From Felis catus (Eukaryota): a DNA stretch of 59,649 nucleotides. Every line of letters begins with the position of its first letter. Positions within the stretch are counted from its first letter, which is position 1. Below are positions 3,714 to 52,105 of the stretch, one piece after another. The position numbers and the translations under genes were made by a program. A model generated the notes under the pieces. The model made no database searches. It was not told where the DNA came from and saw nothing but the letters and a program-made list of their open reading frames with translations. The stretch lies in contig NW_025408533.1 of NCBI RefSeq assembly GCF_018350175.1, positions 1 to 59,649 on the forward strand, written 5' to 3'.

Positions 3714-4831
3714 ATGGAGGCCACAGATCGAGGCGCAGGCGGTGGGGCCGGCGGTCCCGAGGGTCAGCGTGGCCCGGGAGACCCCGGTGTCCCAGATGGC
3801 CCCGGAGGCCACGAGGGCCCCGGCGGTGGAGGTGGTGAGGGAGAGGAGTGTGCCGCGGCCGGTGCGGCCCCGCGGGTCGCGCAGGCGCCATGTGCTCCCG
3901 TCCCGGGCGCAGCTGCCGTGCCAGGGCTTGGCGGACACCCTTTGCCGGGACCCCGTGGGCACAGCGGGCCCACAGCCGGAGGGCCGGGGAGCCAGCCGCT
4001 GCAGTTGTATCCTCTTGGCCGAGTGGCGGGTGGCCGGGGCGATGGGCCTAGAGGAGGCGACGGGGCGGGGAGCGGAGGGGAGGGGGTTCAGCCTGGGGGT
4101 CCAGGGCAAGGAGGGGAGGGGGGGACCGGGGCACCGGAGGGACCGGCCCGGGGGGCGGATGGGCCAGGGGTGGCCGGGAGGGGTGGCGGGGAGAGGCGGC
4201 CTCCTGATGGACCAGCAAGGAGGGGAGCGGACCGGAGAGGATGGAGAGGGGGGAGAGTGGCCGTGGGGAAAGCAGGCCTCGGAGTGGTCAGGACGCCTGA
4301 GGCACCGACGCGATCGGTTTTCGATGATGCCTTAACCGAATGGCTACCAGCTACGTCACCATGCCTTTCCCGTCACCCACGGAGGCACAGGTGGCCCACC
4401 AGTGTCTGGCAACACAGGGCCAGCCCCAGGTCGGGGCAGTTCGGAAGGAGTTCACGGTACTCGGCAACGTCCTAATTATGTTAGTTCCAAACGGGTCCCT
4501 CGTGGGGGGTGGTGTCAGGTCGCTAGGGCCTATCTCCTGAGGGCCGTTCTAATAGTGAATTGGAGACACCAAAGGTTAGGTCCAAAGAGGTAGGTGTGGC
4601 ACCCTGAGCCTGCGGCCACCTGAGGGGGGGCAGAGAGATAGGGGCAAGAGTGATGACATTTCATTTGGATTTTCTTTTTCCCTCACTTTTAGACGACTGA
4701 CTGCCGAAGACCCTGGCCAACTCCAGGTTTCCATCGCCTCCTGTCTTGACCAGCTTTCCCTGTTGGTTTGGACCATGCAGCGCTTCGTGCCCCCGTTTTT
4801 CACATTGCCGGAGCCAGGCAAAAGGGGCTAA
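3714..4831 (+). CDS. CTAG1B-like: Cancer/testis antigen 1 (NY-ESO-1)/LAGE3 family gene, copy 1; exons 3714-4006, 4351-4479, 4693-4831; 186 aa
   Basis: Spliced product MEATDRGAGGG..GPGSQPLQF-YVTMPFPSPTEAQVAHQCLATQGQPQVGAVRKEFTVLGNVLII-RLTAEDPGQLQVSIASCLDQLSLLVWTMQRFVPPFFTLPEPGKRG* parallels NY-ESO-1 (SRLLEFYLAMPF..KEFTVSGNILTIRLTAADHRQLQLSISSCLQQLSLLMW). Kozak ACCATGG, consistent phases, AATAAA at 4973. Confidence 0.92.
4007..4350 (+). other. U12-type (minor spliceosome) GT-AG intron
   Basis: 5' site GTATCCTC; branch box GCCTTAAC at 4329-4336 just upstream of the AG; no polypyrimidine tract. Confidence 0.85.
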
Positions 4832-5019
4832 TTGTAACCTAGCGTCCCTTCCTTCCCTAGGGCGTCCATTCCGATGCTGGTTGCCGCTTTATTACGGGGG
4901 TCTAATTGTTCGTATTGGACTTTGGGCCTTGTTTTTCCCCATTGCTGGAGGAGGGGCGTTCTTACAGCAGAAAATAAAACTATTTTTCCGCATCTGAGTG
5001 TATTTTCAGCTACAGTGTC

Positions 5020-5177
5020 AGAGCAAGGGGAGAAGGCAGAGAGAGAGAGAGAACCCAAGCAGTTCCTGCGCTGTGAGTGCAGAGCCCGACGCAGTGCTTG
5101 AACCCACCAACCGTGAGATCATGACCTGAGCCGAAACCGACTCAGGTGCTTACCTGACTGAGCCACCCAGGCGGCCC
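5020..5177 (-). mobile_element. Can-SINE (SINEC)
   Basis: Reverse-complement tRNA-derived head (gagccacccagg, gagatcatgacctgagccga) plus GA tract. Confidence 0.85.
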
Positions 5178-5351
5178 TCGTTGATTAATTTTTCAATTGG
5201 AATAGTCATATTTTACTTATTGATTGGTGAATGCTCTTTATATACAAAGATACCAAATCTTGGCCAAAGTAATTGAAAATACTTTCCTTCCTCATTGCTT
5301 CACTGAATTCTTGTTTATAGTTCTATTCTGTACTGGAGGGTTTTTAACTTT

Positions 5352-5540
5352 TTCTTGTATTTAAATATGAAGTTTATTGTCAAATTGGTTTCCATACAAC
5401 ACCCAGTGCTCATCCCGACAGGGGCCCTCCTCAATACCCATCACCCACCCTCCCCCCCATCAACCCTCAGTTTGTTCTCAGTTTTTAAGAATCTCTTATG
5501 TTTTGGCTCCCTCCCTCTCTAACCTCTTTTTTTTTTTTTA
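5352..5540 (-). mobile_element. L1 3'UTR end, felid L1_Fc type
   Basis: ttattgtcaaattggtttccatacaacacccagtgctcatccc..caaccctcagtttgttctcag; reverse complement of the element at 33900-34070. Confidence 0.85.
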
Positions 5541-9350: not shown

Positions 9351-10284
9351 CTAGGAGGCACTTTCTTTCCCGAGGGCCTTGAACAAAGCCCTCTTCACCT
9401 CCTTGTTTCGCATGCTGTAGATGACGGGGTTGAGCATGGGGGTGAGGACCACGTACAGCACAGGGAGCGCCCGGTCCCGCAAGCCAGAGCACGCAGAGCT
9501 GGGGAGGATGTAGCAGAGGACTGGAGCGATGTAGAAAATGCAGACCACGGTGGTGTGAGCACCACAGGTGGAAAAGGCTTTTCTTCGGCCGTCAGCGGAG
9601 TGAATCCTGAGAATCGCAGCCACAACACGTACACAGGAGATCGCAACCGGGGCACGGGGTGCAAGAGCCACCACGAAACTGAAGACGAACAGGGCAAGCT
9701 CGCTGGCCCACGTGCTTGAGCAAGAGAGTCTGGTCAGTGGAGGGAGGCCACAGGAGAAGTGGGTGATGAGGCGAGGCCCGCAGAACCTCAGTGGAGCTGC
9801 AAGGACGGTGTGGGCGAACGCATCGGCCAAGGCAAGCAGGCGGGAGGTGGAAGCCATTCCTGCCCGGGTCCGTCCGACGGCCCAAGAGGACTAGGTGGTG
9901 CGGTGGCCGGCCGATGGCTGCATAGCGGTCACAGGCCATGGCTGTGAGCAGGAAGCACTCCCAGGGAGCCAGGAAGTGGAGAAAGAAGATCTGGGGAAGA
10001 CAAGCACGATAGGGCACGGTCCGCACTGCTGCCAGCAGGTGTTCCAGCACCTGAGGCCCCGTGCTGGAGATATAGGCAGTGTCCAGCAGTGAGAGGTTGA
10101 CTAAGAAGTCGTACATGGGAGTGTGGAGTCGGGAGTCCATCACAGTAAGGCTGGCAATGCCCAGCCACGCTGTGGACCAGCAGAAAGATCACAAAGAGCA
10201 AGGGCCTCAACTCCTCTGCGTCGGCCAGCCCTTCCAGAAGGAACAGCGACACTCGGGTCTCATTCCCCAGCTGCCCGGAACCAT
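9351..10284 (-). pseudogene. Olfactory receptor pseudogene, class II, OR3-family-like (candidate counterpart of human Xq28 OR3B1P)
   Basis: OR motifs [53 protein letters not shown] spread over several frames (frameshifts). Confidence 0.92.
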
Positions 10285-10814
10285 GCGCAGAAACCTGCAC
10301 CTGTAGAGTCCAACTCAGAGTCAGATGAGGATCCAAGTGTGGAGTTCCAATTTGCACAAGGCAGCAGGGGTGAGGGAAGGTCCAGAGACAACAACAACAA
10401 CAAGAAAAAGAGACAGGTTTCAAGCTTAAGAAAATAAGACTCAGAATTGGGGGAGTGAGGCTAGGTTCAGGAGGCCAGCGGTAAGGTCGAGGCCAGTAGA
10501 ATGGAATCGGTAACCCCACACCAAGACAAGGTGCACAGACCTTGAAGCCACGGTGCATGCACCTCCTGCAAGGATATCAAAGTCGGTCCCTCAGAAGCTT
10601 CTACCTGAATAAGGACCCTAGACCTCGTAATTACCTGCAGTGGTCCCCTTATTTCACCCTCACCAACCCAGCAGAGCCCCAACTCAGGAGCAGTGATAGG
10701 ACACTAGTCAGGTCCCTCCTCCTCCCGCTCTGAACCTTTCAGTGCCTCCCATCTCACTCAGCGTCAAAGCCAAAGTCCCCCCGGCGACCTACCAGGCCCT
10801 CTGTGATACGCTCT

Positions 10815-10860
10815 CCCTCCTCTCCTCTCCTCTCCTCTCCTCTCCTCTCCTCTCCTCTCT
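10815..10860 (+). repeat. (TCTCC)n pentanucleotide microsatellite; one unit longer in the right arm (58344-58395)
   Basis: Direct. Confidence 0.9.
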
Positions 10861-12149
10861 GACCATCGGGCAAGAAGTCTGTCAGCTCCGTGCCCCATAT
10901 CACATCTTCGGACTGGCCCACAGCAGCAAACGCCCTTGCCTATCCCCTGCCTCGGTGGAAGAGAGCCCTGCCCTCCTATCCAAGGCTAGCTTGTCCGATT
11001 TCCCCAGCTGCTCTCTTCATTGTGCCAGCCCTGCTCGGCAACCCTTTTACATGGGAATGTGCTAAATGCCACTCGACTGTTCACTCTCAGATGGTTTATT
11101 TTATGTTATCTCGATTTTACCTCCATGAAAAAAGGAAGCAAAATAAAGACTTTTTCAGACATATAAAAGCTGAGATTAACTCGTTGTCAGCGGAAAACCT
11201 GCACTACAACAAATGTTAAAGGCTGTTCTCCACAAGCAAGGATGATAGCACGTGGGAACTTGGACCTACATGAAGTAATGAAGCGGGTTCCAGAACTGGA
11301 AAGTATGTGGGTAAATGTAAACATTTTTTTCTCCCTTCAAAATGTCTCTCAATCGTCGCAAACCATCTAAAGCAAAATTATTGACAACACGGCGTGGGGT
11401 GTGTAACTGCTATAGAAATAAAAGGTATGACAACAACAGCACAAAGGACACCAGTGGGTGGTTGGAAGGGTACTGCTGTAATGTTCTTACGTTACGTGCG
11501 AAGTGATTTGAAATTACTTGAAGGTGGTCTATAATGAGGTAAAACACATATTAGGATCCCTAGAACCCTAGGGTTAATATGTACACTTCTCTGGCGGAGA
11601 TAAAGTGAATTTCTAGAAATTACTCAATCTGAAAGGAGTCGCGAAAAGACAGAGAGGGGAACGCAGAACACATGGGGCAAACAGAAAATAAATAGCAGGA
11701 TGGTAGATGGAAACTCAACGATACCCCTCGTTACATTTATTCTAAATGGTCTAAACGTGGCAACTAAAACACGGAGATTGCCAGACTGGATAAAAAGGCA
11801 AAGCAAAACTATATGCTACGCGTAAGAAATGTGCTCTATGAAGACACAGATACGGTAAAAGTAAAAAGATGGGCAAAGATACACCATGCAAGTCTTCTAA
11901 TAAGAAAGTTTGAGTAGCTATATTAAGAGCAGGCAGAACAGACTTCAGGACAAGGAATACGATGGGGTGGAGGACGTTTGCTAACGATAGAGGGGTCACT
12001 TTGTGAAGAAGACATAAAATCAAAACCTAAATACACAGTAGGAAAGAAATAATGAAGCTAAGAGGAGATATGAATAAAACGTTAAATGGACAAACAATAG
12101 AGGAAAATCCATGAAGCGGAAAGCCTTTTTTTCCTTTCTTTCTTTTCTG

Positions 12150-12830
12150 TTTTAATGTTTATTTTTGACACAGAGAGAGACAGGGAGCGAGTGGGGGAGG
12201 AGCAAAGAGAGAGGGGGGACACAGAATCCGCAACAGGCTCCAGGCTCCAGGCTCTGAGCCGGCAGCACAGAGTCCGATGCGGGGCTCGAACCGACGGACG
12301 GACCGTGAGATCATGACCTGAGCCGAAGTCAGACCTTTAACCGACTGAGCCACTCAGGCGCCCTCTCCCCCACTTTTTAAAGGTTTTATTCATTTTTGAG
12401 AGAGTGCATGTGGGGGAGGGGCAGGGAGAGGGGGACAGAGGATCTGAAGTGAACTGCGCTGACAGCAGCGAGCCCCATGTGGGGCCTGAACTCACCAACT
12501 GCCAGATCGTGACCTGAGCCAAAGTCGGACGCTCAACCGACTGAGCCACCCAGGTGTCCCTGAAAGCTTCTTTAAAACAAACAAACAAACAAACAAACAA
12601 ACAAAAAACATACCAGGGGCGCCTGGGTGGCTCAGTCGGTTGAGCGACCGACTTCGGCTCAGGTCATGATCTCGCGGTCCGTGAGTTCGAGCCCCGCGTC
12701 GGGCTCTGTGCTGACAGCTCAGAGCCTGGATCCTGTTTCAGATTCTGTGTCTCCCTCTCTCTGACCCTCCCCCGTTCATTCATGCTCTGTCTCTCTCTGT
12801 CGCAAAAATAAATACATGTTAAAAAAATGT
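12150..12830. mobile_element. Cluster of three Can-SINEs: ~12150-12363 (-), ~12375-12560 (-), 12616-12830 (+)
   Basis: Three SINE heads and tails, with (AAAC)n between. Confidence 0.9.
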
Positions 12831-13964
12831 TTTTCTAAAAATACCAATAAAGCTGATTTTGAAAAATAAAGTGTAACCAGGGAATATTAGGAACAATATT
12901 TGTGGGTAAGTTTCCCAATTTAGATGAAATGGACAAATTCCTTGAATGACACAACTTACCAAAACTGACTCAAGAAGAAATAGAAGACCCGAATATCTAT
13001 GAAAGCAATGGAGCCGAAAACTCCAGGCCCCCGTGGCTTTACTAGTGGCTACCTCCAAATACTTAAAGGAGAACTATCACCAATCCTACGCAAATGCTTT
13101 CAGGAAGCAAAGGAGGAGAAACATTTCCCAAATCATCTTATGAGGCCAGCATTACACAACCCCAAAACCAGATGAAGACATTGCAAGAAAAGAAAACCAC
13201 AGGGCAATATCCTTCAGGAAGTCACACACACAAAAGAACTTGATTCGATATTAGCAAATTCAACCCAGCAACATACAAAGAGGATGATACCATCATGGCC
13301 AAGTGGGGTTTATCCCAAGAATTGGTTTTCATTAAAAACAAAAAAGTCAATCAGTGTCATCTGTCATATTAAGAAAATAAAGGAGAAAAAACATGTGATC
13401 ATTTCAACAGACACAGAAAAAAAGCATCAGACAATATCCAACAACCACTCGTGACAAAAACTCTCGGAAAACTAGGACTAGAGGGAAACGTTCTTAATCT
13501 GATAAAGGGAACCTACAAAAATCCTACAGCTAACATGATACTTAATGGTGAAAGATAGAATCACCGCCCCCGCTCCCTCGCCCGCAAAGTTTGAGAAACA
13601 AGGTATGGATGTTCACCACTTCCATTCAACACTGTCCTGGAAATCCTAGGCAGTGCACTAGGCAAGAAAGAGGAATAAAAGTAGTGACACAGATTGCAAA
13701 AAAAGAAAAGGGATTATCTTTATTCAGAGATGACATGCTTGTTTACGTAGAAACCCCTAAGTGATGTACAAAAAAAAGAAGAGTGACATTTTAAAAAATC
13801 ACTACCATTTATAATAGCATCCCCAAACATGAAGTATTTGGGGACACATGTAATAACATATGTGCAAAACCTTTACGGTGAACACTAAAACCTATTGATA
13901 AGTGAAAGAAAGCTTACAAAAATGGAGAAACGCATCCTATGCGTGGAGCGGAAGATCCTGTATT

Positions 13965-14066
13965 CTTTTTTCTTTTAGCGTTTATTTATTTATTTTGGAA
14001 GAGACAGAGAGAGCATGAGCAGGGGAGGGGCAGAGAGAGAGAGAGGGAGCGAGAGAGGGAGGGAGG

Positions 14067-14102
<36 letters not shown>

Positions 14103-14229
14103 CCCAAGCAGGCTCGGAGCTGTCAGTGCACACCCCGACTCTGGGCCCGGTCTCACAAACCGTGAGATCATGACCTGAGCCGTAATCAAGAGTCAGACGC
14201 TTAATCGACTGAGCCACCCAGGTGCCCCA
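13965..14229 (-). mobile_element. Can-SINE
   Basis: Head, (GA)n tract, flanking repeat cctgtattctt. Confidence 0.9.
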
Positions 14230-15404
14230 AGGCCCTGTATTCTTAAGATGTACACTCCCACCACACCATTCTAGAAATTCATTGCAAACCCAGTAAAAAT
14301 CGTGATAACGCAGAAATGGACAAGCTGATTCCAAAGTGTATATCCAAATGCAAAGAACCTGGAATAGGCAGCTCGAACTTGCAAAAGAGGAATAAAGTCG
14401 GGAGACACAGGATGACTAAAAGAGGATACAGACACAATGGAAAGTTCACATGTCACTGGTGGGACTGTAAATTGGTATGATCACATCGGAAAACAGTGCT
14501 TCCGTTTCTTATACAGTCACACTTACGCTTACCATGTGACCCAGAAATCCCACTTCTGCTAGTTACACAAGGGAATTAAAAATATATGTGTGTGCAAAGA
14601 CTTGTACGTGAATCTTCGTATCAACTTGATTAACGATAACCGCAGTTTGGAAACAAGCCAAACGTCCAATAGCAGGTGAGTGGTTAAGCCTAAGTTACGG
14701 TACATCCACGCAATGGAATACCGGTCAGCAACAAAGAAGGATGGACATACTGTGTGATTCCTGGAAATTCCAGAAAAGGCAAAATCTAAGCTGAATTTGC
14801 TGTGTGGGGGCAGACTGTAGAGGAGGACATTGTCTGCACGGAGGCACAAGGGCGACTGTGAGAGCGATGGGAATGTTCTGTATCTCGGCTTTGGCTGTGG
14901 ACACCTTTGTCGTAACTCATGAAACCGTACGCTTAAATGTGTGCAACTTCCCATACGTGCATTTTGCCTCAAATAAGCTGAGCAAAAACAAAAAAAGAGA
15001 GGGGACAAACAAAAACTGAATAGCAAAATGGCAGACTTACATCCGACCATATCGGTAATCGTATTAAATGTGAATTTGCCAAGCAGTCCAATTTAAAAGC
15101 AGACATCGTTAGAAGGGTGCTTTCTTTAAGTGACCAAACTACACGCTGTCTACGTGAGCCACATTCAAGATACAAAGACACCAATAGGTTACAAGTAAGA
15201 GGATGGAAAAGGACTTACGAATAAATAGTGAGCAAAGAAGCCTGATGTGGTTATATCGATATTAGAGAAATCAGACTTCGAGGAAAACTGTGTTACCAAA
15301 GATGAAGGGATGCGTTTCATACTAGTAACAGCAGCAATGAATCCATCTGGAAGAGAAAATGATCATAAATATGTCTGTGCCTAATGACACACCTTCAAAA
15401 TGCA

Positions 15405-15650
15405 CGGGGCGCCTGGGTGACTCAGTCGGTAAGCGTCTGACTTCGGCTCAGGTCATGATGTCACCGTTGGTGAGTTCCAGCCCAGCGTCGGGCTCTCTGC
15501 CCGTCGGCACCGAGCCTGCTTTGGATCCTCTGTCCCCCTCTGTCTCTGCCCCTCCCCCACTGGCTCTCTCTCTCCCCCTCTCTCAAAATAAATAAACTTA
15601 ACACACACGCACACACACACACACGCACGCACGCAGACACACGCGCGATG
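15405..15650 (+). mobile_element. Can-SINE followed by (CA)n
   Basis: ggggcgcctgggtgactcagtcgg head. Confidence 0.9.
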
Positions 15651-16059
15651 CAAGAATTTTTGAGATTAATAGGTGAAAGGGACAAGTCCAAAATCACGGT
15701 TGGAGTTTTTAACATCCTCTCTCAGCAAGCGAGAGAGAGAGACAACACACTCTGTTAAAAGAAATAGAGCAGGGATTGGCAAACTACCGCCTCCTGGCCA
15801 AATCCAGCCCGGGGCCTCTTTTATGTGAAAAGTTTGTTGTCCCCTGACATAGAACATACGATCAGTGGTATCACCTACCTTGACCGATGTCTTTAGAACA
15901 CTAAACAGGAGATCTGAATTTCACATGTGTGTCCACTACACATTGTTTTCAAGTACAAGTATGTTCGCCAAGATAAAGCATTTTCTGAGCCACGGACCAA
16001 TTCTCAACACATTTCAACGTCAAGGATTGAAATTTAACCCGGTACGTCTCTGACCAGCC

Positions 16060-16335
16060 TTGCCTTGTTCTTGATTCTAGAGGGAAAGCTTTCAACCTCT
16101 CACTGTTGCGTATGATGTCAGCTGTGGGTTTTGTCGTATGTGGGCTTTGTGGTATTGAGCTATACAACTTTTCTCTGCCCCCATTCGTGGAGGATTTTTA
16201 TCATGGAAATATGTTCTATTTTGTCAAACGCGTTTTCTGCACCTAGGGAGATGATCATATGGTTTTTATCTTTCATTCTAACGATGCGGTGCTTCGTTTA
16301 TAGACACGCATGTGTTGAAAGATCCTTGTTTTCCG
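16060..16335 (-). mobile_element. Inverted L1 ORF2 fragment
   Basis: ccttgttcttgattctagagggaaagctttc..atgatgtcagctgtggg..gagatgatcatatggttttt. Confidence 0.8.
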
Positions 16336-37640: not shown

Positions 37641-39887
37641 TTGGATGTCTTTGTATTCCTAAACATAGTCATGAGCTTTGCTCAGGGATGCTGGTAAGTG
37701 AGTGGGAAAAGATTGATCCTTTTGAGTCTTGGCTTTGAAGATTTGCTGCGTGGGACCAGAACAGCTCAGTGGAGGATTCGTTTTTCCCGCTACACTACTG
37801 AGGCAAGACCCTTCTGAGTGCCCTGCCCAAGGCCTCCAGAATTACGCGGTCTGTCCTCCCTGCCGGTGGGGATAGCCACCAGTCTCTGTCCTGCTTGAGG
37901 GGTCGGCACAATTACCTTTCCTCCTTTAAGATGGCTCTTTCTCTGGCTTCACATGGTTTGCTCACACACTTGTGCTGATCAGTGGTGTGCTGCACACTCC
38001 AGCAGGACCCTCTGTGTATACGTGGGCATCTCACCAATCAGCACTTCCCTTCCCACTTAGAGCTGCGTTTTGTCTCTTAGAACCAAAGTACTCCAACTCA
38101 TACAGATGAGAACGGTCAGTGGGTTTCAAGCAACAGACTCAGGAAATGCGGGGTGATTTGGGTGATCCGCAATGACTTACTGGGTGAAGCTGGGGGAGGC
38201 CAACAGACTCCCATTCACATCGCAGGACAGGGAAGCAGAGAACCCAACTGTCACCAGTGCGCAAGCTGGACCATGTGTTCTCCGAAGGCAAACTCTAGGT
38301 AGAGTTTGGGCACACGCTGCCGGGAAACCATTTTTAAAGGTGACCACGTGGTACACGGTCACGTCTGATGGTCTCGGGTAACCCAGAGCCTGGGAACCAC
38401 TACTCCAATCTTGACATGATTGCGTCCAGACCCAGAAGGAACCTTCCGGCCTCTCTCTGACCTTGCTGGTGGGGTCCCTTAGCGCAGGCAGCCAAAGTGT
38501 GGAGACGTCAAGAAAACCCACCTCAGAAAAGGTCCTGAGAGTTGTTGTTACATTGCCATTGCAATGGTAGCTGGGTCTCCAACCTCCCCGCGTCTCTGTC
38601 CTTAATGCAAGAGCACCAAAGAGTGGCTTCCTCGCAGTTGTCGCGAGGATATCTGACATTGTTGGGCAGACTTGGAGAACCACAAATCCCTCTGAAATGT
38701 CACCCGGCTGACTGACACTTCTGTGAGCTTGCCTCCTGGCATTCCAGAAGAAACCAATTTCCTCTGCTTGGGAGAGTTTCTCTATGTCTCCTCTGTCCTT
38801 TTTCCTCTCTTCCTCCCTCCCTTCTCTTCTACTCACTCTCCCCCTCCTCCTCCTCCTCCTCCTCCTCCTCCTTTTCCTCTCCCCTCCTCTCTCTTTCCTC
38901 CCTTCACTCCCAATGTTCCAGACCATGTCCTTCAGATCATTGCCCTAGACAGGCCATCCTGTACCACCCAACCTAAATTAGCTGGAACAACAAAAGTGCA
39001 AGATTAAACTGAAGGGGGGTTTAGAATTTGCTGAAGATGACATTTCACCTCAAGGGAGAAATACAGATTATTCGCTAAGTGGTTTGGGACACCTTGACTA
39101 AAACCTTTTGGAAAGAAAACAAACTTACATACCAATGTTCTTTCTCACGAAAATTACCTCCCAGGATGTTAAAGTTTTAAAGTACTAGAAGATGTTCTCA
39201 GTGAATATTTTTGTAATTTTATACTGAGGAGGGCCTTTCATAGGAAATGCAAACCGCAAATTATACTGAAACAATGGATCACATAAACAAAAAAATTTTA
39301 AGCCACTCTATACCAAAAGACCAGGAGCACAGATAAAATGAAGAAATGGCAAGGAAAGGTATTTTCCAATTATAACAAAACTTTGATATTCTAAACAAGT
39401 TTAAAAAAAAACAAGTATTTATTAACAACAGTGGACCAATGCATATTTAAGTCTTCTTTACAGGTTTCTGTAGCTTCTCTTAGGCTATTTCACTCAGTGC
39501 TATTATTGTTATGGTTAAACATAACAAGAGTGCAAGAGTGGACATCATTTTTTGCGTGTTAAATTTGAGTTATCTTACTCAAATGTGAATAGAGATGTCT
39601 ACTTGGCAGCTGGATACAGGAGTCTGCAGTGTGGGCAATGTCTGCGATGAAGATACAAATCTGGGACCCAGGACACGGCCCAGAGAGCCCCGAGCCTGCA
39701 CGAGCTCGCCACGGGCAGCTGAGAGCCGGTATAGGGGGACAAGTGGCCCACGCACCGAGCCCTGGGGTCCTGGGACACTCCGAGGTGGCAGAGCAGAGAG
39801 GGAGCCGGCGGCAGAGACTGAGGAGGGGAGGGAGGGACCCCAAGACTGCAGGGTGGCCTCCTGGAACAGGAGTCAGACGTGTGCGCC

Positions 39888-39952
39888 CGCACACACACCT
39901 ACCCACCCACACACACACCCACACACACACACACACCCACACACACACACAC
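39888..39952 (+). repeat. (CA)n microsatellite
   Basis: Direct. Confidence 0.9.
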
Positions 39953-40087
39953 GCTGGGGGCAGGAAGGAGGTGGTCAGGAGGGAAGAGAGAATGATCCTC
40001 TCCCTGGGGTGCTGCTGATGGTCAAGAGCGATGAGGCCCTAGATTGCTCACTGTGTTTGACAGCGAGATCCTGGAGACCTGCAAAGA

Positions 40088-41585
40088 CAGGGTCGGGTGT
40101 GGGGTGAGGGTCAGGAGGGGTCGAGGAAGTCAGGCGCAGGGTGGGAGTTGGGAGGGGGCAGGGAGATGGGATGTGAGGTGTGGTTCCGGAGGGGACGGGG
40201 AGACCAGGTGCGAGGTGGAGTCAGGAGGCGATGAGGAGATGGGGTACGGGGTGCAGGGTGGGGGTCAGGAGGAGACGGGAAGGTTTGGCAAGGGGTGCGG
40301 GCTGGAGGTCTGGAGGGGATAAGGAACTCGGGTGCGGGGTGGGGGTGTGTGTCAGGAGGACACAGGAATGTCAGGTGCGGGGTGGCAGTCGGGAAGGGAC
40401 CGGGAAGTTGGGTGGGGGGTGGGGGTCAGGAGGAGTCAGGGAGATCGGGTGCTCGGTAGGGTTGGGGGTCAGGAGTGGATGAGGAGGTCAGGGGAGGAGT
40501 AGGGGTCAGGACGGGACAGGGAGGTCGGGTATGGGATGAGGGTCAGGAGGGGATGGGAGGTTGGGTGCAGAGTGGGGGTCAGGTGGGAACTGGAGGTTGG
40601 GTGCAGATTCCGGATCGGGAGTGGATGGGGATTTGGGGTGTGGGGTGGGGGCCAGGTGGGGCGTGGAGGTTGAGTGGGCAGTGGGGGTCAAGAGGATGGC
40701 GGAGGTTGGATGGGGGGTAGGGTGGGGGTCAGGAGGACACAGGAATATCAGGTGTGGAGTGGGAATCACGAGTGTCCAGCAAGGTGAGTGGAGGGGTGGG
40801 TGTGAGGAGTCATGGAGATCGGGTGCCAGGTAGGGGTGGGGATCAGGATTGGATGGGGAGGTGGGGTGTGGCGGGGGGGTCAGGGGGTGAGAGGGAGATC
40901 GGGTTCAGGGTAAGAGTCAGGAGGGGACGGGGAAATCAGGTGCAGGGTGGCGGTGGGGGACAAGAGAGAACGAAGTGATCGGGTGCTTGGCAGGAGTGGG
41001 GGTCAGGAGGGGACGCAGAGGTTGGGTGCAGATTCCAGGTCAGTAGCAGATGGGGAGATCAGGTGTGGGGTTGGGGTTCAGGAGGGGATGGGGCTTGGGT
41101 GCGGGGTGGGGTCAGGACGGACCGGGAAATTCGGGTGTCGGGTGGGGTTAAGGAAGGGACCAGGTGATCGGGTGCGGGGTGTCAGTGGGAGTCAGGAGGG
41201 GATGGCGAGATTGGGTGGAGGGTGGGGGTCAGGTGGGATCTGGAGGTTGGGTGCCGATTCCGGATCGGGAGTGGATGGGGATTTGGGGTGCGGGGTGGGG
41301 GTCAGCAGGGTACGTGGATGTTGGGTGCAAGGTGGGGTCAGGAGGGGCTGGGAAATTTGGGTGTCGGGTGGGGGTCAGGATGGGACAAGGTGATCGGGTG
41401 CGGGGTGCAGATGGGGTCCGGAGGGGATAGCGACATTGGGTGTGGGGTGGGGTCAGGGGGGGACCTGGAGGTTGGGTCCAGATTCCGGGTCAGTAGGGGA
41501 CGGGGAGATCATGTGCGGGTTTGGGGTTCAGGAGGGGATGGGGAGATGGGGTGTGGGCCAGGAGGGGACGGGGCGTTTGGGGACA
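40088..41585 (+). repeat. Degenerate ~30-35 bp G-rich minisatellite, ~1.5 kb
   Basis: Recurrent GGGGTCAGGAGGGGA(C/T)GGG..(T/C)GGGTG(C/T)GGGGT units. Confidence 0.92.
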
Positions 41586-41839
41586 GCGGGTCCAAACCAC
41601 TCCCGGGAAGGGCCGCACTGTGGCCGCCGAGCAGAGAAGGCGGTGGCTTCGGGGTGGCCAAGTCGCAGCGTGTGCAGAGGTGGGGGGCTGCAGCCCTTCC
41701 CACGTGCCGGGGACCCGCAGAGAGCGGGGTGCGTGGACGCAGGAGGGACAAAAGAGCTCAGGCAGGGGAGGACGGCTTGGCAAGGGAGGGAGCGGCCCCT
41801 CCTCGCCAGCCCGGCTCCGGGGGGGCCCTCCTCCCCCAG

Positions 41840-42890
41840 GTCCTCACCGCTCTGGACCGAGACGCCTCCTGTCGGAAGCCTAAGTTGGGGCAAAACCTGG
41901 AACAGACCATCAGCCTCTTGTCCGGCAACAGCTAAGGGTGGCGGAACCGGTGAGGAGGGGGCGTCCCAGGCCTGAGATGACCTCGGGGCCGAGCCCTGGA
42001 TCGGGTGGCACGGGGGCGGGGATGGGGTGGTCACCGGACTCTCGTGCCCTGCGCACACCCGGGCCCCCTTCATTAGTGCCTTTCTTTGGGCCCTGCGTGG
42101 GGGCGATGGTGACGGGACCAAGGGTCCTGACCTGGCAGCAGCAATATCCCCGCCCTCCCACCCTCGTGCCCCCGGGTCGTGCCAGCCCCTGCCCCCTCTT
42201 CCTGTTTATACCCCCAACCACCTATTTATTTAATTTATCTGCACCTCACCGTGTCCGTCTGTCACCACGTGCCCCTTCTCTGGGATGTGGACAACCTCAC
42301 GCCCCTTCTGTCCTTGGGTCGTCCTGGCTCCCTGGTGGCACGGTCAGCCTCGGCCTCGCCTCTGGCACCTGCCCCTGGCCGTGGCCGGCCCCGCCGGGTC
42401 CGAGCAGGGGCCCCCGACACCAGCAGCACTTGATGGCGAGGAGGGGGGCGCCCAGGGTGATGCGGCGAAGCCGTCCCCAGACTGTGGCTGCGCCCAGGGG
42501 TCTCCCCGCGGCTGGGTCCCGGCATCCCCTCCGGACTTCTCGGGGGTCGGACCGTACCTTTCTCGGGCGCCCTGTCCCCAGCACCTGGGGAGCTATGAGC
42601 GGGTTCGTGCCAGGGCCCCACGTGGGCCTGGGGGCTCTGGAAGTCTCCTTCTCCAGGCCCGAGCGCCCAGCTTCCTCGGCGTGGTGCCCGCTCAGCCCGG
42701 ACCCCTCACCCCCGCTGCCCTGTCCTGCGCCCGCCCCGAGTGGCCGAGGCGGCAGTGCCTTACCCCTCTGTTCCCTCTTCCCCCTCCGAGGAATCTGGCC
42801 CCGGCGCGTGGTCCCGGAAACCCAGCTGTCCCCTCTGTTTTGGCATGAGCTTCTTTGTCGTTGTTCCTGGAACCTTGTTTCTGAATTAAA
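41840..42890 (+). pseudogene. PLXNA3: Mirror copy of the PLXNA3 terminal exon and 3'UTR (coding 41840-41935; ATTAAA at 42885)
   Basis: As 26296-27346. Confidence 0.88.
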
Positions 42891-44192
42891 CGTCGGGAAA
42901 ACGGTGGCAGTGTGTGGCAGGTGGGTGGTCGGCGAGCAGGGAGGCAGGTGGGGAGGCTGTTGGACTCTGGAGGAGCTGGGCTCCCTTTGTGGGAGGAAGG
43001 GTGACCCGTTGCACGGGTCCCGCGCATCTGAGGAGGTCCAGGGCCACGTCCGATCCGTGCCAGCAAACCCCGGTGGCTCTCCCGTCAAGATCCGGTCGGA
43101 ACCCGTTCCCTTCTCCCCACCTCCACTGGCCGCAGCCTGGGGGTCTCTCGCCTGCGTGCCAGTCTCCCCACTTCTGTCCTGCCTGCCCTCGTCCCCTTCC
43201 CAGCGCAGCAGGCACCGGGAACCTGATAAGACGTAAGCTGCATCCCGTCCCGCTCCGTTCAAGACTCCCTAGGGTCATCGACAGCACCCAAGCTCCTTCG
43301 TGTCCCACGACGCTTTACTGCCGCACGTGCACCTCCATGCTGACGGGCCCACCTGCTTCTTACCCCCCGACACCTGTGAAAGTAATGCAGGTGGGGAGAG
43401 CGTGGGACGCAACCTTAAGGAGAGCGGCCAGGAATGCTATTTGAGTGGGCCAGATGGAACCCCGGGGGACGAGAGGTCCAGGCAGGGAAGAGGCAGTGCA
43501 AGGGTCCTGAGGCAGGCCTGGGCCTGGTGTGTTTCAGAGAAGGGAGGAGGCCAGTGTGGCTGGATCCGAGAGTGAGCAAGGTGGAGAGGGGAGGGAAGGA
43601 GGCCGTGGAAGATGCGGGCCGGATCACATCTGACGCGGCGGGCCGCGGGGCAGGGCTCTGGCTCGTCTCTGGGAGGGGAGCCCGGGGACGCGTTGGAATC
43701 GACTTGTTTTGTGACCTGACTGACGTGTTAAGGCCGCCCGGCGCCTTCAGCAGTCCGTCTGTGGGGCCAGGGCGGTGGCCTAACTCTGGGCTTTGCTGGG
43801 AGAGGGAGGGAGGCTCACACTAAGTTCCGGTCTCTTGACGATCTGGCCCCACAATTCCGGGCCAGTCTTGGGAGCCCTATCCGGAAAGGGTGGGTCCCAG
43901 TGCCCCTTCTCTTTGTCCCTTTCCTCCAGCTGCCCCTTGCAGTCCCTCCCCTCCCTCTCTGGACTCTTACCCACAGAAGACTCTACCACCATACGGCTTG
44001 AAGGCCTACCAGCTAGGAGCCAATGCCTTTGTAAACTTAAAGAGCCCAGTTTCTCCGTTAAAAGAAGGGAGAGCCACGTTCTCAGGTGAAGTGACAAGAA
44101 AACCTACGGTTCCTCGAGTCAATAAAGGACAAGACTTTTCTATTACAAGTGAAGACAGACAAAAAGAAAAGCAAAAAAAAGTATTCACGACG

Positions 44193-44420
44193 GGGGTGCC
44201 TGGGTGGCTCAGTCGGTTGAGGGTCTGACTTCGGCTCAGGTCACGATCTCACAGTTCGTGGGTTTGAGCCCTGCGTCGAGCTCTGTGCCGACAGCTCAGA
44301 GCCTGCAGTCTGCCTCAGATTCTGTGTCTCCCTCTCTGTCTCTCTGCCCCTTCCCCGCTCACGCTGTCTCTGTCTTGCTCTCAAACACTAAATAAAAGCA
44401 TTCAAACAAAAGAGAAAGGG
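44193..44420 (+). mobile_element. Can-SINE (mirror of 24780-24993)
   Basis: Head and tail. Confidence 0.9.
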
Positions 44421-44421
44421 A

Positions 44422-44453
<32 letters not shown>

Positions 44454-45744
44454 AGAAAAAAAGGATTCATGTTGGCTTAACCAAAGGGAGAGTTTCTGGA
44501 TGTGTGTAACTGAACGATTGTGGCGGGGGCGGGGGGCGGATAGTTCTGTCTTCAGGCGTGGCTGGATCCAGGATTTGGTTCTCTGCCATGTGCCTTCCTG
44601 CTCTTGCTTCCCATCTGTCCAGTGTCAGCCTGTTCCCTCCCCCCGCCCCCGTAGCCCCGGCAAGGCCGGAAAGGAAGGAACCAAAACCGTGTTTGCTTGC
44701 AGAGATCACGACCATGCATGTAGAAACTCCGAGGGAACCCTCGTGAGGCTAGCACTCCTGTTTAGCGAGGTTCCAAGACACAAGCTACTCAGAGGGAGCT
44801 AACCACCCCCCACCCCGCCCCCAAACCCGTAGCCACTTGTGGCACCACCCCCTTGCTCATCGGAAACAAGGCCAGTAAGCCCCAAAATTCCTATTCTAGT
44901 GTTTCCGTGCTTATTTCCCTGGTACAAAAGGAGTCTTCTACTTCGGTAGGAAGCCACCCTACTGGTTGGTGATGCGGGGAGACCAGACTTCTGCCGGCGG
45001 GGCGCCTTTTCTGGAGAGCACTTGTGTGCCGAGAAGCTATAGAACGCGGGAATTCTACCTCTTGGAAACGATCTGAAGGAAGTAACTGTTCGCGCAAAGA
45101 CTTCTGTTCAAGAATCCCATTGACTCACACGACCCATAATAGGGGCAAAGCTGAGAACGACCCGACTGCTCAACATTATGTAATAATACATTTGTGTGTC
45201 TCCTGGATAACAGTTTTTGAAGGGTTTTAGGGAGTGGGAAAGCTAGTACGTTCAACGGGGAAAAACAAAAACAAAACAAAACGAAACAAAAAGGATCCGG
45301 AGAAAAGTTAACGCTAAACTGGAAAATGGATACGTTATACGTTGCTATCCATTCAACGGGTAAATACAACTAGGAACGTATTCCAAAACGTCAGCAGTAT
45401 TTACCGCTGAATATAGGACCTGATTTTCCTCTCCCTGAGTCGTCTTCGATAAGCTTGGGCTGCTGGACTACGATTCCCAGAACCTCCCTTCCAACACCAG
45501 AACAAAGGTAAGAAAATGTGGAGGCGCAGGAACTGAGAAGAAACTCGGACACAAAAGAGTAGCTCAGTTTCATGTTGTGCAGTGACAAACACGTAAGCGC
45601 CCGTCCCTCCGGGCGCAGGGAAGGAACTGAAGTGGGCCAAGAGCCACCGAGGCCCGGACCTGCAGAACGTTAGACCCCCGATAGTAAAGTGGCGAGGACG
45701 CCAAGTGTCAACGCCCCGTGCCTTGCCCAGTGAGGGCTACCAGG

Positions 45745-46884
45745 TTAGGCCTCGGCCCCCTTTCCCGGACCTAGGCGCCGCGGAGGCCGGGACCCCAAGG
45801 CGCGAATGTTTCGTATCACCAGGGGAAGCCGGTCCAAGAAGGAGTTGACGGAAACTCGGAAGCAGATGGGGTCTTCAGTAGTCCATCTCCTAGAAGTGAG
45901 GGAAGAGGGAAATCCGGTTAAAGGGGAGACCTGCTGTGGAGGTGCAGGGCACCAGCCCCTTCCCCCACACAACCCCCCACCCCCCCGCCTTCCACCTAAC
46001 AGCGTGCGTCGGGGCCTCCACGACGGCACTGGAAGGCAGAGATGCGACCACGGCACCCGCCGCCACCGCCCACCCGTCCCGCGCATACTCTTGTTGGAGG
46101 ACTCACACGGCCAGGGCGCTGCCCCTCACGCAAAGCTCCTTCTGAGCCAACCCTCGGTGGCGTTGGACGTGTGTAGTCAGGGCCCTGCGGGCCATCTCTG
46201 CCTCCAGGGGCGACCGGAAAGACACAGTGAGCCTGCTGGGAGGCACCCGGTTAAGGCACAACGGGCTCCTGGAGTTCCCATGGCCTGAAGCCTCCTGACC
46301 ACTCAGAGGCCCGCCTCTACCCCCGGGACACTCGCGCTCCCTCCCGCCACCTCTGCCCACCCTGAGCCGCTTCCCCCACCCTGGGGGCCCGCCAGGCTGC
46401 CCACCCCCGCCCCCGTCCGTCCCGTCCCCGGGCTGCCGCCCTGCTCCCCAGCCACCCCGCCACGGCCCCTGCCCAGACAGGCTCCACGGAAAGGATACAA
46501 CTCCAGCAGTCCTGAGGAGGTCACCGCCGCCGCCGCCGGCGCTGCGTCTCCACCGGGGGCCAGGGCCCTCGGGGCCCGTTCGGCCAGGGGAGGGGCGCAG
46601 GCCCCCTCGACCACTGCTCCCTTGCTGCCAGGGCCACCCTCGCCATCGTGGCGGCTGCAGTTGCCCTGGCAACCGGGACCTCGGGGGCTAAGCTGGGGGT
46701 CGTGGCCGTCCGTGCCTCCGTCGGAGGCCTGTGGGCCTGCCCCCGCGTCCTCCGCGCCACCCTCGGGAGCCCGCGTGACCGCCGCGCCGTCCGCGCCGTC
46801 ATCGTCAGGGGCCTGCGTGACCGCCACTTCCTCCGCGCCGTCGTCCGGGGCCGGAGAGGCCGCTTCGTCGTCCGGGGCCCTCGT
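45745..46884 (-). CDS. LAGE3-like: LAGE3-like copy 3' (mirror); exons 46499-46884, 46107-46235, 45745-45889; ACG start
   Basis: Exons appear identical to copy 3. Confidence 0.8.
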
Positions 46885-47798
46885 GGCCGCCGCACCGGCC
46901 TCCTCAGAGCCCACCGCTACGCTGCGCCCACTGTCGGCCGACCGCTGAGACCCCTGGCAGGCCTCGCGAAGCCCGGCCCCTCGGCGCGCAAGGCTGTCGG
47001 GGATGGCCAGGGCGCCTGCGCAGACAGACCCCGCGGAGCTGGTTGCCACCGAGCCGGCAGAGCCTGGATCCGGTCGACGCTGACCCCGAGGAGATGGAGG
47101 CTGGTTCCGGACGCTGCGCCCCCCGACGCGTGACGTCACTGTCGGGCTCCTACGTCCCCGAGAGCATTCTGGTGAGGCCACTGGCACGTGACTGTTTCCG
47201 GCCCGGCCCGCCCCTCCCCCCAAGCCTGTGTCTGCGCAGGCGCCAGCCGGGCGCACTTGCCAGCAGCCAGCTGACCGCCGCCCGCCCGGTCCCGGGCATC
47301 GAGGCGTGGGCCGCGCTCAGGCGCTTCTGGGCAGCACCGTGCCTGTCCCTGTCTGTGGGCTCCCCGTACGGCTCGGGTCTGCGTGTCCCGGGGGCCCTGC
47401 GACCCGGGGGCCGGGGGGGGGGGCCTACGCGGGATGCCGAGCAGGGGCCACTCCCAGGCCCTGCCTGTCCTCAGGGAGCACACCCCGCACGGCCCCTAGG
47501 GGAGCTGGAAGGGATGGGCCTGGCTCCCTCACCATTTGTCGGTCCCGGGCGCCGTCAGTCCCCTAGTGCCTGCCAGCCTGGGGGAGGGTACACCGCCGAG
47601 GGCGCGACCGGCCTCCGGCCGGGGGCTCCCGGGCTCCTGCCTCCCACTGCAATGGCTGTGGGCTTGGGCCGGGGGCCCAGGGGGGCCCACCTGGACTTGA
47701 GGGCAGCGGCTCGGGGGAGCACCGCCCCGGCGACAGCTCCCCGGTCGCTTTGCCCTCTGCTGCGGCAGCCCTGACGGGCTGTCCCCCCCTCCCCCCAG

Positions 47799-48895
47799 GA
47801 ACAAAGTCTTTCGGCTCTCGGGGTGGGGGGGCTGGACGTGCCAGGGGCCCTCAACTGGGAGGTGACCCTGTGTCTGCAGGCCTGCTGGGTGCTGGCCTAC
47901 TTCTGTGTCTGCAAGGGGGTCAAGTCAACAGGAAAGGTACAGCTGGAGGCCGGCGGGTCGGGGTGGGTGATGATGGCAGGGGTGGGGGCAGCATGGCCGG
48001 TGGGGAGAAGGGGTGTCTCCGCTAGGGGGGGGCAGGTGGACCCTGCCATGCGAGGTGACCGGGCCAGGGCCTGAGGCGGGGGCAGGTCCTTGAACCCAGC
48101 CCGGTGGATTTCCCACGCGTGCCTGGGTAGTGCTCCGCAACCTCCACACTCCAGCCCAGCCGACTTCCGTCCTGAGGGGACAGGCCCAGGCGACCCCCAG
48201 CTGAACTTGCCTGTGTCGGGCATCCCTGCCCCAGTTTCCCTCTCTTCCTCACTCACTACTTCCTCACTCTCTGCTTTGCGGCCAGCCTGGGGGGACCCGG
48301 CCCGTGGCCCTCCTTTGCCTACCTGTCCTGCTCTGCTGAGGGTGGGACGGAGGCAGAGGTCTTCGCGGTCACCTCGCTGTCGCCTCTGTCTCTGGCCGGC
48401 CCAGTCCACTCCGTCCTGCCCAGGACCCTGCCTCTGTGCAGAGAACCACAGGAAGCATGGGACCTGCCTCCAGGCCGATGTCCTGCTCCCCACCTGGGGA
48501 AGGTCCTGCCTCCACCCTCCCTCTCTACAGCTGACCTGTCCTTGCGGGGGCAGCCGATGGCCAGCTGAGCACCCCGCTTCCTTCGGGAGGAGCCCAGGCT
48601 CTGAGGAGTAGAAGGGGGGGCTGCAGGCTGGCCTCCCGCTTGACCTCGGAGTGGACCGTACCACAGTGGGGGGAGTGTGGCCCGCCTGCCCCCCTGCTGA
48701 GGCTGGGGACCCCTAAGTGGGGAGGCGGGGCCGCAGGGCCCCTTCTGAGCAGGTTACCCCCCCCCGTCCCTCCCCCGCCCCAGATCGTGTACTTCACGGC
48801 TACCTTCCCCTGCGTGGTCCTCGTCGTGCTGTTGGTGCGGGGAGTGCTGCTGCCCGGCGCCCTGGATGGCATCATCTGCTCTCTCAAGCCTGACT
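47799..48895 (+). pseudogene. SLC6A8: Mirror SLC6A8 fragment: exon 4 at 47799-47936, partial exon 5 at 48784-48895
   Basis: As 20305-21402. Confidence 0.92.
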
Positions 48896-49697
48896 TGTGG
48901 AAGCACTCACTGGGTCGTGAGTGCCGCACCACGTGGGGCGTAGAGATCACGCACACAAGGATGTCAAAGAATTGAAAACACCAAAGGTCATGTAAAGTCA
49001 TTCTGAACCTTTTGGGGGAGAAATGCACACAAAAGAAGTGGGGACCACCCTCAATCCCACCACACAGACATACGAGGTGTTTACACTTCAGGCTACCGTG
49101 GCAGGATTTCCGTGCACATATACAGTAGCTTCCTAAGTTGGGATTTTAGTGATTTCCCTTTTGCACTGTGGTTTTTCCCTATGCGACCGCATCCCTGTTC
49201 TCCGTGGCCACTAACTACTTTAGCTCCAGTCGCCATCCCTTTCCTCCTTGCCTGCTACTGGCAGGCTTGCCCCCCGACGGGAGCCCCTTCGTGACCTTCC
49301 CAGACCGCCGATCTGATCCGCACCTGTGCTCAGTCGCCCCCTCCAAAGGCCGCTTTGGTGTGTCCACCGGTACCGGGGAAGGGGACGGGGTGCGGGGCCG
49401 TGTCCGTCTGGGCTGTGGCCCATCTCCCTCCACGAACCGCTGCGAGGTCGTGGAGCCCCACGTGCTGGGGACACTGAGCCCAAGGAAGAGGCAGGGCCCT
49501 CTGGACAACAGGCCGTGGTGCCTGGCGGCCTCCCACGAGGTCTGGGGAGGGGCTAGGGGTGTGGGGAGGGGGTGGAGCTGAGGTGGGACTGGTTTGCGTG
49601 GGTGCAGTGGGGTCACGCGTCACAGCGCGTGGCGACGATTGGTGAGGGAGCAGCCGCTGGAGAGGCAGCAGCTGCTGGAGAGGCGGCCGAGGGCGGG

Positions 49698-50042
49698 GTT
49701 TATAGACGTGCACGTGTTGAAAGATCCTTGTTTTCCGGCTGCAGGTTCCTCCTGCCCGTGCCCGGAGATGAGAGCTGCCTGCCCCGTAGGCAGTGACAAA
49801 GAACAGGGCAGACAGAGACAGTCCGAGGCTCAGGCTGAGGCGCTCTTTGGTGACACTGCTCATTGAAATGCTTCCACCAGCCACAGGCCGCTCTAGACAC
49901 TGGCCACCTTCTTGCTGTGACACCTGCCTCCAGGACAAGGCAGCTGTGCCTTTACTTTCCTCACTTGTCCTGAGGACCTATTTGGAGACGCTCAGGTACA
50001 GATTCGTAACTATAGAGTCACGGCGTTCTCCACTGCTCAGTC
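49698..50042 (+). repeat. 345-bp unit B' (mirror)
   Basis: Direct repeat of 16296-16640. Confidence 0.95.
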
Positions 50043-50948
50043 TCTCTCTGCTGACACTGCTAATTCTCCCTCAGGCAAGGCTCTGTTCCTCCTCTCTCCG
50101 ATTTAGAGACTCACCTCGTGCACCGGGGCGTCGCCCATTCCCCTCCTCAGCCACTCGGGTGCCTTGTACGTGGCCCCACTGTTGTGCTAAATAAGAGAGT
50201 CTTGGAGGGGAAGGCAAAGGGTAATGTACTTCATGTCCCCTCCCCACCTCAGGGAGACCTCTTCCCCTTTTTGTTTTCCTCCAGGACCCTTGTCAGGACT
50301 TCAGGGAAGCAAGCAGCAGCGTAATAAACTGGAAAAACACTTTGGGGAAGGATGATACAAGTGAGAGCCAACCACAAGGAGCTCTGAGAATTGTGGGTTC
50401 GGAACCTCAGGGAATGAGGCCTCTGATGACACGGGAGTATAGAATGGGCAGTGGGGCCGACCTAGCCAGCTGTCCCAGCGCTCTTCTGCACAGATCTGAA
50501 TCAAGGCCGAGAAGCCACAAAGTCCTACTCTGCAGGTATTATACATGACTATGTACATGCTAGTATAAAACTAAAACAAAAGTTCTAACATGTTGACAGT
50601 AGTTAATGTCCTGAATAACAGGACATAATTTTTTTCTCCCGTCGCCTAACTTGTCTTCTTCAATTGCCTTCTAGTACTTGAGTATCTGAATGTCAGAATC
50701 TCTCCCCCTACCTGAGAACAAAGGCGAGAATAGGAGAAGGCGTAGATGCTTTAAAAATAAACCCAGACACAGAATAGTAGCAGTTACCATTTGATCACCA
50801 AAAAAAAAAAAAAAAAAAAAAAAAAATGTGGATCTGAAGCACCCAAGGGCCAGTATAGGCAAAAGATGCGGCCTCAGTAAGAAAACGGCAGCTGCTGCAG
50901 GAATCACTGTCATGTGGGGGGGACACAGAGTTGGGTCCAGCCACCTTT

Positions 50949-52105
50949 TCACTGCTGCGGCTTTGTGAAAAAGGGGGGCATGATGATCTGCATGGCCCGT
51001 ATCACTAGGGAAAGCTGGCCAAGACAGGAGGTGATGGACATTTGGAGCTGGCCAGGGTCATCGGCAGTCAAGCGGCTACGAGGTAGGAAAAAATAAGTCA
51101 AGTTAGAGGGCCGGTGGGGCACATTCCCCGCTCCGCCCCTTCACACAGCAACGATCCTAGAGCACCACACTCCTTCCTTCGACTCACTCCTTTCCTGTTT
51201 CCCTTGTCTCCGTTACAGCTCCTCCGGAATTGACCTTGTCCCTGGTCACCTGCCACCACCCTCTCCCTGGACCGTTCTAGAACTAACACAGTCAGGATGC
51301 TGCCGTTCACATGGAGCTCCTCCCGAACTGGCTCCTGGAGCTCCTCGTTTGGAGTCAGGAACCTGTGGGCAATCTCCGCATCCATGGCCGAGGGGAAAGG
51401 TATAGTGAGGGTGCTGGTGGAGACTGGGTTAAGGCACCATCCACAGTACTAATTTTGCCTGTGCCTCAGGCCTCCTCTTCAGTGAGGCCTGCCTTCCCCA
51501 CCCCAGGCTGACCCTCAGGCTGTCCACAACCTCCCACCCTATACAGCCAGGCCACCCCGGATAGCATTGTCCCTACCGCTTCAGTCCCATCAGGCGGTCC
51601 ACCCCACTCCCCATCCTCTGTCAGCACGGGCCAAACCCTAGCCGATACCCTCCAGGTGCCCGGAGCTCCCTCCTGCTCCCCTTTCAACTCCACTTCCCCA
51701 AGTCTCCCCCCCACACCCCACCCCGCCGCGCGCCAGACCACCTCCAGCCCATCCCCCTGCCGTCCAGCCCGCTGGGACTCCTTGAATAGGATACAACTGA
51801 AGCAGTCGGTTACCAGGACCTCTAGCGCCAGGCGCGGCATCTCCACCAGGACCTGGTGTGTAGGGTGCCCGCTCCATTTGGAGAGCGCCACCAGAGGCGG
51901 CACCTACCTCTCCCACAATGCTGGTTCTTTCCGGATCGCTCAGGCCTCCGGGGTTGCTGGGATGGCCAGGGTCACAGGCACCACCCGAACCACCAGGGAC
52001 TCTGGGGCCACTGACACCACGAGGTCCACCTGGCACACACTGGCCACCACCTGCTGCGCCCACCACCACGCCCACGGCACCCGTGCCTTCGTCTGCTGCC
52101 CTCAC
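50949..52105 (-). CDS. CTAG-like: CTAG/LAGE3 family copy 2' (mirror); exons 51795-52105, 51288-51413, 50949-51075; GTG start or ATG at 51877
   Basis: Exons appear identical to copy 2. Confidence 0.82.

Follow-up and report, generated by a model that had tools for sequence, protein, structure and literature searches.

We analyzed a 59,649-nt stretch of the domestic cat genome (Felis catus, NCBI RefSeq assembly GCF_018350175.1, contig NW_025408533.1, positions 1 to 59,649; hereafter the window) and identified in it six three-exon loci of the Pcc1/LAGE3/CTAG family. Most likely, this is an X-linked cancer/testis region of the cat that carries four old LAGE3/CTAG paralogues, which we call A, B, C and D, with B and C doubled as mirror copies (B′ and C′) by a palindrome whose arms span at least 18.8 kb. 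A and D are intact, while B and C lack the ancestral ATG. The anatomy of the loci, their family and fold, the age of the lineages and the state of the start codons were all directly accessible in the data presented here. The genes are already known in the sense that their family has been described, felid annotations include them and X-linked palindromes of this kind are on record.

Gene models and locus anatomy

The three-exon model of A was first built by eye, with an ATG at 3714, a TAA at 4829–4831, donors GTATCC after 4006 and GTTAGT after 4479, and acceptors before 4351 and 4693. A local tblastn search with the three exon peptides of A yielded the five further loci (Table 1). All models were then checked piecewise with a script, which took every exon in its proper frame and joined sequence across the junctions for the two split codons alone. 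At every one of the six loci, the donors are GT and the acceptors AG, both introns are in phase 2 and the frame is not interrupted by a stop, and exon 2 measures 126 nt in B and 129 nt in A, C and D. A preliminary description of this DNA had listed six loci with these exon borders, phases (2, 2) and an exon 2 of 126–129 nt, and the script check bore it out. The same description had reported open spliced frames of 178–219 amino acids (aa); the stop-free lengths stood, but a conventional start is missing from four of the six copies (B, C, B′ and C′), and the lengths of B and C (187 and 219 codons) are counted from non-ATG first codons. In composition-matched shuffles, frames of such models stayed open in just 0.3–2.3% of trials. 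Positions in the mirror copies are obtained as 69202 minus the position in B or C.

The window has a G+C content of 56% and contains two runs of N, at 8836–8967 and 29953–30120. Neither gap overlaps any of the six gene models, and since the closest coding base, in the ATG of D, is 1.46 kb away, all reading frames are independent of the gaps. How A is ordered and oriented with respect to the palindrome, and D with respect to the left arm, depends on the joins across these gaps. The right flank of the second gap (30121–30200) is a GATA-type microsatellite, which is the likely cause of that gap.

Table 1. Gene loci and palindrome elements in the window, with the closest relatives of each gene type
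Feature	Coordinates	Strand	Codons	Description	Closest relatives
A	3714-4006 / 4351-4479 / 4693-4831	+	186	CTAG1/NY-ESO-1 type; ATG, TAA	primate NY-ESO-1-like, bats, camels
B	17097-17407 / 17789-17914 / 18127-18253	+	187	CTAG-like subgroup, one-codon deletion in exon 2	alpaca, deer, muntjac (one-codon exon 2 deletion in common), Panthera
C	22318-22703 / 22967-23095 / 23313-23457	+	219	'LAGE3-like' type	Leopardus, hyaena, meerkat, dog, sloth, ground squirrel, rhinoceroses
D	31581-31849 / 32164-32292 / 32542-32680	+	178	ATG, TGA	badger, walrus, ground squirrels, a bat, peccary, camels
C′	46884..45745	-		mirror of C; protein identical	
B′	52105..50949	-		mirror of B; identical across entire gene	
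Left arm	9560..28313			18.8 kb at 98.76%; outer end set by window end only	
Unique spacer	28314..40893			12.6 kb; contains gene D and gap 29953-30120	
Right arm	40894..59649			reaches window end	

Family membership and fold

Steps that needed whole proteins used database stand-ins (P0009 for A, P0196 for D, P0027 for C, and P0164), and exons were searched singly. In two protein searches, the references were stop-free stretches that ran from exon 1 into intron 1, of which the exon 1 residues alone were scored. The search with exon 1 of A returned 15 clustered felid proteins named 'cancer/testis antigen 1-like', and all three exon peptides of A are identical to P0009, the Felis catus protein of that name. 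With exon 1 of D as the query, annotated hits came from bobcat, cheetah, leopard and walrus; exons 2 and 3 of D are identical to the cheetah protein P0196 and 96–98% identical to proteins of Lynx and leopard. C shares 94–98% identity per exon with Leopardus P0027, and the B, C and D types together show 94–100% identity per exon to models of cheetah, lynx, leopard, Leopardus and Panthera. The genes had been presented as hidden, which they are not: A is an annotated cat protein, and the other three types are annotated in other felids. The Leopardus protein P0027 is named 'collagen alpha-1(I) chain-like' and carries 188 residues too many at its N terminus. When 1.84 billion representatives were searched with a profile, 507 relatives were recovered.

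We compared the loci with the Pfam Pcc1 profile (PF09341; gathering cut-off 20.9 bits), a check that the preliminary description had proposed, and both the exon halves and the whole-protein stand-ins matched it. Among the latter, P0009 scored 59.3 bits, the C proxy P0027 scored 54.5 bits and the D proxy P0196 scored 39.7 bits; the true LAGE3 of polar bear reached 85.9 bits. Exons 2 and 3 taken separately gave 25.1 and 22.7 bits for A, 35.3 and 16.9 bits for B, and 16.9 and 22.3 bits for C, whereas the D halves matched in exon 3 alone, and weakly (16.2 bits). In A, B and C, exon 2 aligned with profile positions 3–45 and exon 3 with positions 47–75.

At the sequence level, P0009 matched human LAGE3 (chain 6gwj_B of the OSGEP/LAGE3/GON7 structure) with an E-value of 2e-19. 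An AlphaFold model of P0009, computed with 104 relatives and therefore covering the A type, shows a disordered tail (residues 1–95; predicted local distance difference test (pLDDT) 41–54) followed by a β1-α1-β2-β3-α2 domain with a pLDDT of 80–94, in which strands span residues 96–103, 128–135 and 138–145 and helices residues 107–120 and 148–172. The best fold match of this model was again human LAGE3 6gwj_B (template modelling (TM) score 0.86, root-mean-square deviation 2.0 Å, 48% identity over 81 columns), followed by Pcc1 of yeast, plants and archaea; indeed, the top 11 Protein Data Bank (PDB) matches were all LAGE3, Pcc1 or KEOPS chains. The genes share a plan in which exon 1 encodes the disordered Gly/Pro/Ala-rich tail and the Pcc1 domain is split over exons 2 and 3. 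The Pfam matches above the cut-off, the LAGE3 E-value and the TM score thus confirm that the loci belong to the Pcc1/LAGE3/CTAG family, as had been proposed.

Four separate placental lineages

Our main tree comprised 34 named proteins, aligned over the domain (84–85 columns), and its deep branching order stays uncertain. The clades of the four types were nevertheless recovered with support of 92/85 (A), 91/84 (B), 91/92 (C) and 100/99 (D), and the true LAGE3 proteins of carnivores (bear and mustelid) formed a separate clade (100/99). A grouped with the primate NY-ESO-1-like protein P0037, with modest support (88/76), and with bats and camel CTAG1. Proteins of alpaca and deer fell into the B clade; sloth, squirrel, rhinoceros and dog into the C clade; and squirrel, bat, peccary, camel, badger and walrus into the D clade. 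When the carnivore copies other than LAGE3 were forced together, the cost was 120 log-likelihood units (approximately unbiased (AU) test, p-AU 0.00015), and forcing the felid copies together cost 142 units (p-AU 0.0008). In a larger tree of 155 rows, the B, C and D exon pieces of the window itself, entered as separate fragments, fell into the matching groups.

The preliminary description had explained the cluster as a carnivore or felid expansion and had suggested a phylogeny with LAGE3 and CTAG relatives. In that phylogeny, the four cat types are separate and true LAGE3 stands apart. Since each type has orthologues in other orders and the AU tests reject monophyly of both the carnivore and the felid copies, the cluster did not arise by such an expansion. 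Judged from these trees, the four types are separate, old lineages of placental mammals, and none of the copies in the window is the KEOPS subunit LAGE3 itself: the proxies of A, C and D fall in three clades other than that of LAGE3, and exon 3 of B falls with the CTAG group. CTAG1 proteins of other orders were the nearest relatives for A only.

Exon 2 of B groups with panda (Ailuropoda) 'LAGE3', and we considered whether B might be a LAGE3 orthologue. We rejected this, as the panda models mix a B-type exon 2 with a true LAGE3 exon 3, and B has its one-codon deletion in common with the alpaca and deer proteins. The two panda models, P0064 and P0069, may be chimeric.

Divergence of domain and tail

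We compared the divergence of the Pcc1 domain with that of the disordered tail by counting protein-level differences, a measure that cannot tell relaxed constraint from positive selection. Between bear and ferret, true LAGE3 differs at 29 of 61 tail positions and at 11 of 81 domain positions (48% versus 14%), so that the domain diverges ∼3.5 times more slowly. In A and D, by contrast, domain and tail diverge at similar rates. The cat A protein differs from those of seven other felids at 2–6 of 96–97 tail positions and 3–4 of 89 domain positions, and the D proteins of cheetah and badger differ at 23/71 and 28/89 positions, respectively. Unlike in LAGE3, the Pcc1 domain of A and D therefore appears to be under no extra constraint relative to the tail, which points to weak constraint.

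Start codons and coding state

Only A and D, among the four types, have both an ATG start and an AATAAA signal, the latter 142 nt (A) and 159 nt (D) past the stop. Both are intact genes. In the earlier models, the first codon was GTG for B (17097) and ACG for C (22318). Reading upstream to the nearest in-frame stop, we found no ATG in frame for either type (144 open codons were scanned for C). Both also lack AATAAA and ATTAAA within 600 nt past the stop codon. Aligned with B, the alpaca and panda proteins have their initial Met at the position of a GTT (17067–17069), and the first in-frame ATG of B is codon 77 (position 17325), which would give a product of 111 aa with the whole domain but without most of the tail. 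The tiger and jaguar proteins P0164 and P0167 ('LAGE3-like isoform X2') begin exactly at this internal Met. B has lost its ancestral ATG and at best encodes a tail-less 111-aa Pcc1-domain protein that starts there.

Exon 1 of C contains no in-frame ATG. Codon 1 is a Thr (ACG), present in both palindrome arms, whereas Leopardus (Geoffroy's cat) has Met at this position, and the hyaena and meerkat proteins start there as well. In this genome, C is most likely a young pseudogene that has lost its function, or else reliant on non-AUG initiation.

These findings would fit a history in which four old Pcc1-fold paralogues resided on the cat X chromosome, and B and C were doubled later by a young or gene-converted palindrome. 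A and D would have stayed intact, B would yield a short product at best, and C would be a pseudogene or depend on non-AUG initiation. The cat genes would encode germline-expressed proteins of the Pcc1 fold.

Several points weigh against this account. An ACG with a purine at -3 can support low-level initiation. Both B and C retain open frames, as few shuffled sequences did, and this fits recent loss or continued use. An upstream exon, non-coding or coding, could also supply a start for both genes. Furthermore, B was placed through two exon pieces of 41 aa each, taken separately, and its exon 2 lies beside the two chimeric-looking panda models. Finally, the comparison of rates was made at the protein level, without synonymous divergence (dS).

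The alternative that survives best goes one step further and regards A and D as the sole working genes, with B and C (four of the six copies) being unprocessed pseudogenes that are carried along by the palindrome. We consider this quite possible, if short of probable. It would account for the GTT/GTG and ACG codons at the ancestral starts, for the missing upstream ATGs and for the missing AATAAA signals, and it agrees with the low CpG ratio at the 5′ end of B (0.55 versus 0.83–0.88 in the others) and with the Met that Leopardus still has in C. Yet B and C are free of frameshifts and stops, and their splice sites are intact. A short product of B is plausible because the B-type RefSeq models of Panthera start at the internal Met, and C has a CpG-rich 5′ end with a cAMP response element (CRE) site 254 nt upstream.

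Probable germline expression and relation to KEOPS

LAGE3 binds OSGEP through two helices and GON7 through β1 and α2 (PMC6722078); for the family as a whole, the partners described are Kae1/OSGEP at the helices and, at β1 and α2, GON7 or a second Pcc1. Its paralogues CTAG1 and CTAG2 also belong to the Pcc1 family and are expressed in testis, ovary and tumours (PMC9889334). By analogy with these human proteins, the cat genes are probably germline-expressed or germline-restricted. A conserved role of the cat types in KEOPS is unlikely, given that the domain keeps its fold but evolves quickly.

Many non-primate placentals, the cat included, might keep the four old Pcc1-fold lineages beside LAGE3, and in germ cells the products could cap OSGEP or GON7 and so alter KEOPS assembly and the synthesis of N6-threonylcarbamoyladenosine (t6A), with felid B acting as a tail-less 111-aa competitor; we regard this scenario as doubtful. 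Improbable, too, is the related proposal that Pcc1-fold genes expanded specifically in carnivores or felids, that selection kept their frames open and that they encode germline variants or competitors of KEOPS subunits. In its favour, the A model retains the Pcc1 fold, with predicted counterparts of the LAGE3 helices that contact OSGEP, the frames are open, and human CTAG1/2 are expressed in testis (PMC9889334). However, the orthologues in other orders and the AU tests speak against the expansion, B and C have no ATG, the rate of domain evolution matches that of the tail, in contrast to true LAGE3, and our literature search returned no report of a CTAG protein binding OSGEP. Nor do the open frames argue for selection, as had been suggested: B and C have lost the ancestral ATG, the palindrome arms are uninformative in this respect (see below), and the A and D domains show the rates described above.

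The palindrome

Inverted arms of many kilobases, >99% identical, surround a unique spacer, as in the X-linked palindromes that carry ampliconic testis genes. The arms are 99.8% identical over 9560–27000 (17.4 kb), with 35 substitutions and several indels, and the differences between them concentrate in the final 1.3 kb (27000–28313), a G-rich minisatellite at the inner border. Their length is a minimum, since the right arm extends to the last position of the window. B and B′ show no difference and C and C′ a single, intronic one, where ∼2.3 per gene would be expected; the arms are too alike for their differences to inform on selection. Recent origin is limited to the mirror copies of B and C, and the palindrome is young or gene-converted. 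X linkage of the region is suggested by the gene family and by the 124–129 Mb contigs on which the felid homologues lie.

That the mirror copies are an assembly artefact, i.e. a falsely inverted duplicate, is very improbable. In favour of an artefact, the symmetry of the arms is undisturbed by any net indel from B to C, assembly gaps flank the structure and the right arm runs off the window. Against it, the 35 substitutions and the several indels in 17.4 kb, together with the strong divergence of the inner-border minisatellite, are unlike copied sequence, several cat accessions encode the identical A protein, and human CTAG1A/B has the same architecture.

G-rich minisatellites are present at both inner arm borders (27648–28140 and 40207–41557), with units of ∼37, 73–79 and 225 nt. 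In addition, B is flanked by 345-bp inverted repeats that are 97.4% identical (16296–16640 and 19158–19502; mirrors at 49698–50042 and 52562–52906), and this nested pair could flip the B segment.

Upstream regions and neighbouring features

A block of 1.8 kb upstream of A (1766–3545) is 92% identical to one upstream of C (20296–22027; mirror 48904–47175). The A and C proteins are just 36–38% identical, and the duplicons are therefore mosaics. Past this shared block, we found TGACGTCA (CRE) sites at 3608, 22064 and 47131, the only three in the window (0.8 expected). They lie 106 nt before the first codon of A and 254 nt before that of C, and fit putative CRE-driven germ-cell promoters, although they are only a hint of these.

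At the left end of the window (388–1883, minus strand), four consecutive exon-like open reading frame (ORF) pieces match positions 206–365 of the Pfam SNF profile (sodium:neurotransmitter symporter family) with 49–57 bits each. This is a fragment of a creatine-transporter-like (SLC6) gene or pseudogene that runs off the left end of the window, with no 5′ part seen rightward. Between 23460 and 27346, no last exon of PLXNA3 was found with approximate plexin C-terminal motifs or among ORFs of ≥30 aa.

Comparison with known systems

For annotation, these results are of value in that two of the four cat types have no conventional start codon, and in that 'LAGE3-like', 'collagen-like' and similar names mask four distinct old lineages, none of which is the KEOPS subunit. 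Seen from the cat, the human family of LAGE3 and CTAG1/2 looks like the reduced remnant of a larger ancestral set.

LAGE3, the KEOPS subunit in PDB entry 6GWJ, shares the Pfam domain and the fold with the cat proteins, and the domain aligns along its full length. It differs in that carnivore LAGE3 forms a clade of its own, scores 85.9 bits against 39.7–59.3 bits for the cat types and has a constrained domain. Among the RefSeq models named 'cancer/testis antigen 1-like' or 'EKC/KEOPS complex subunit LAGE3-like', the Felis catus model is identical to our A. The felid models differ from the window in that cat C has an ACG where the Leopardus model has an ATG, and some of the public models are mis-named or over-extended.

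A close parallel is provided by the X-linked human genes CTAG1A/CTAG1B and CTAG2, which, like cat A, encode a Pcc1-domain protein with a Gly/Pro-rich disordered tail. CTAG1A and CTAG1B are listed as a palindromic pair of low diversity (PMC11890787) and as an X ampliconic region (PMC6028258), and lie in an X palindrome with near-identical arms, as in the cat. Unlike in the human CTAG1 palindrome, the cat arms within the window carry B and C, not A. Furthermore, the cat retains the lineages of B, C and D, and these are not among the members given for the human family (LAGE3, CTAG1 and CTAG2; PMC9889334).

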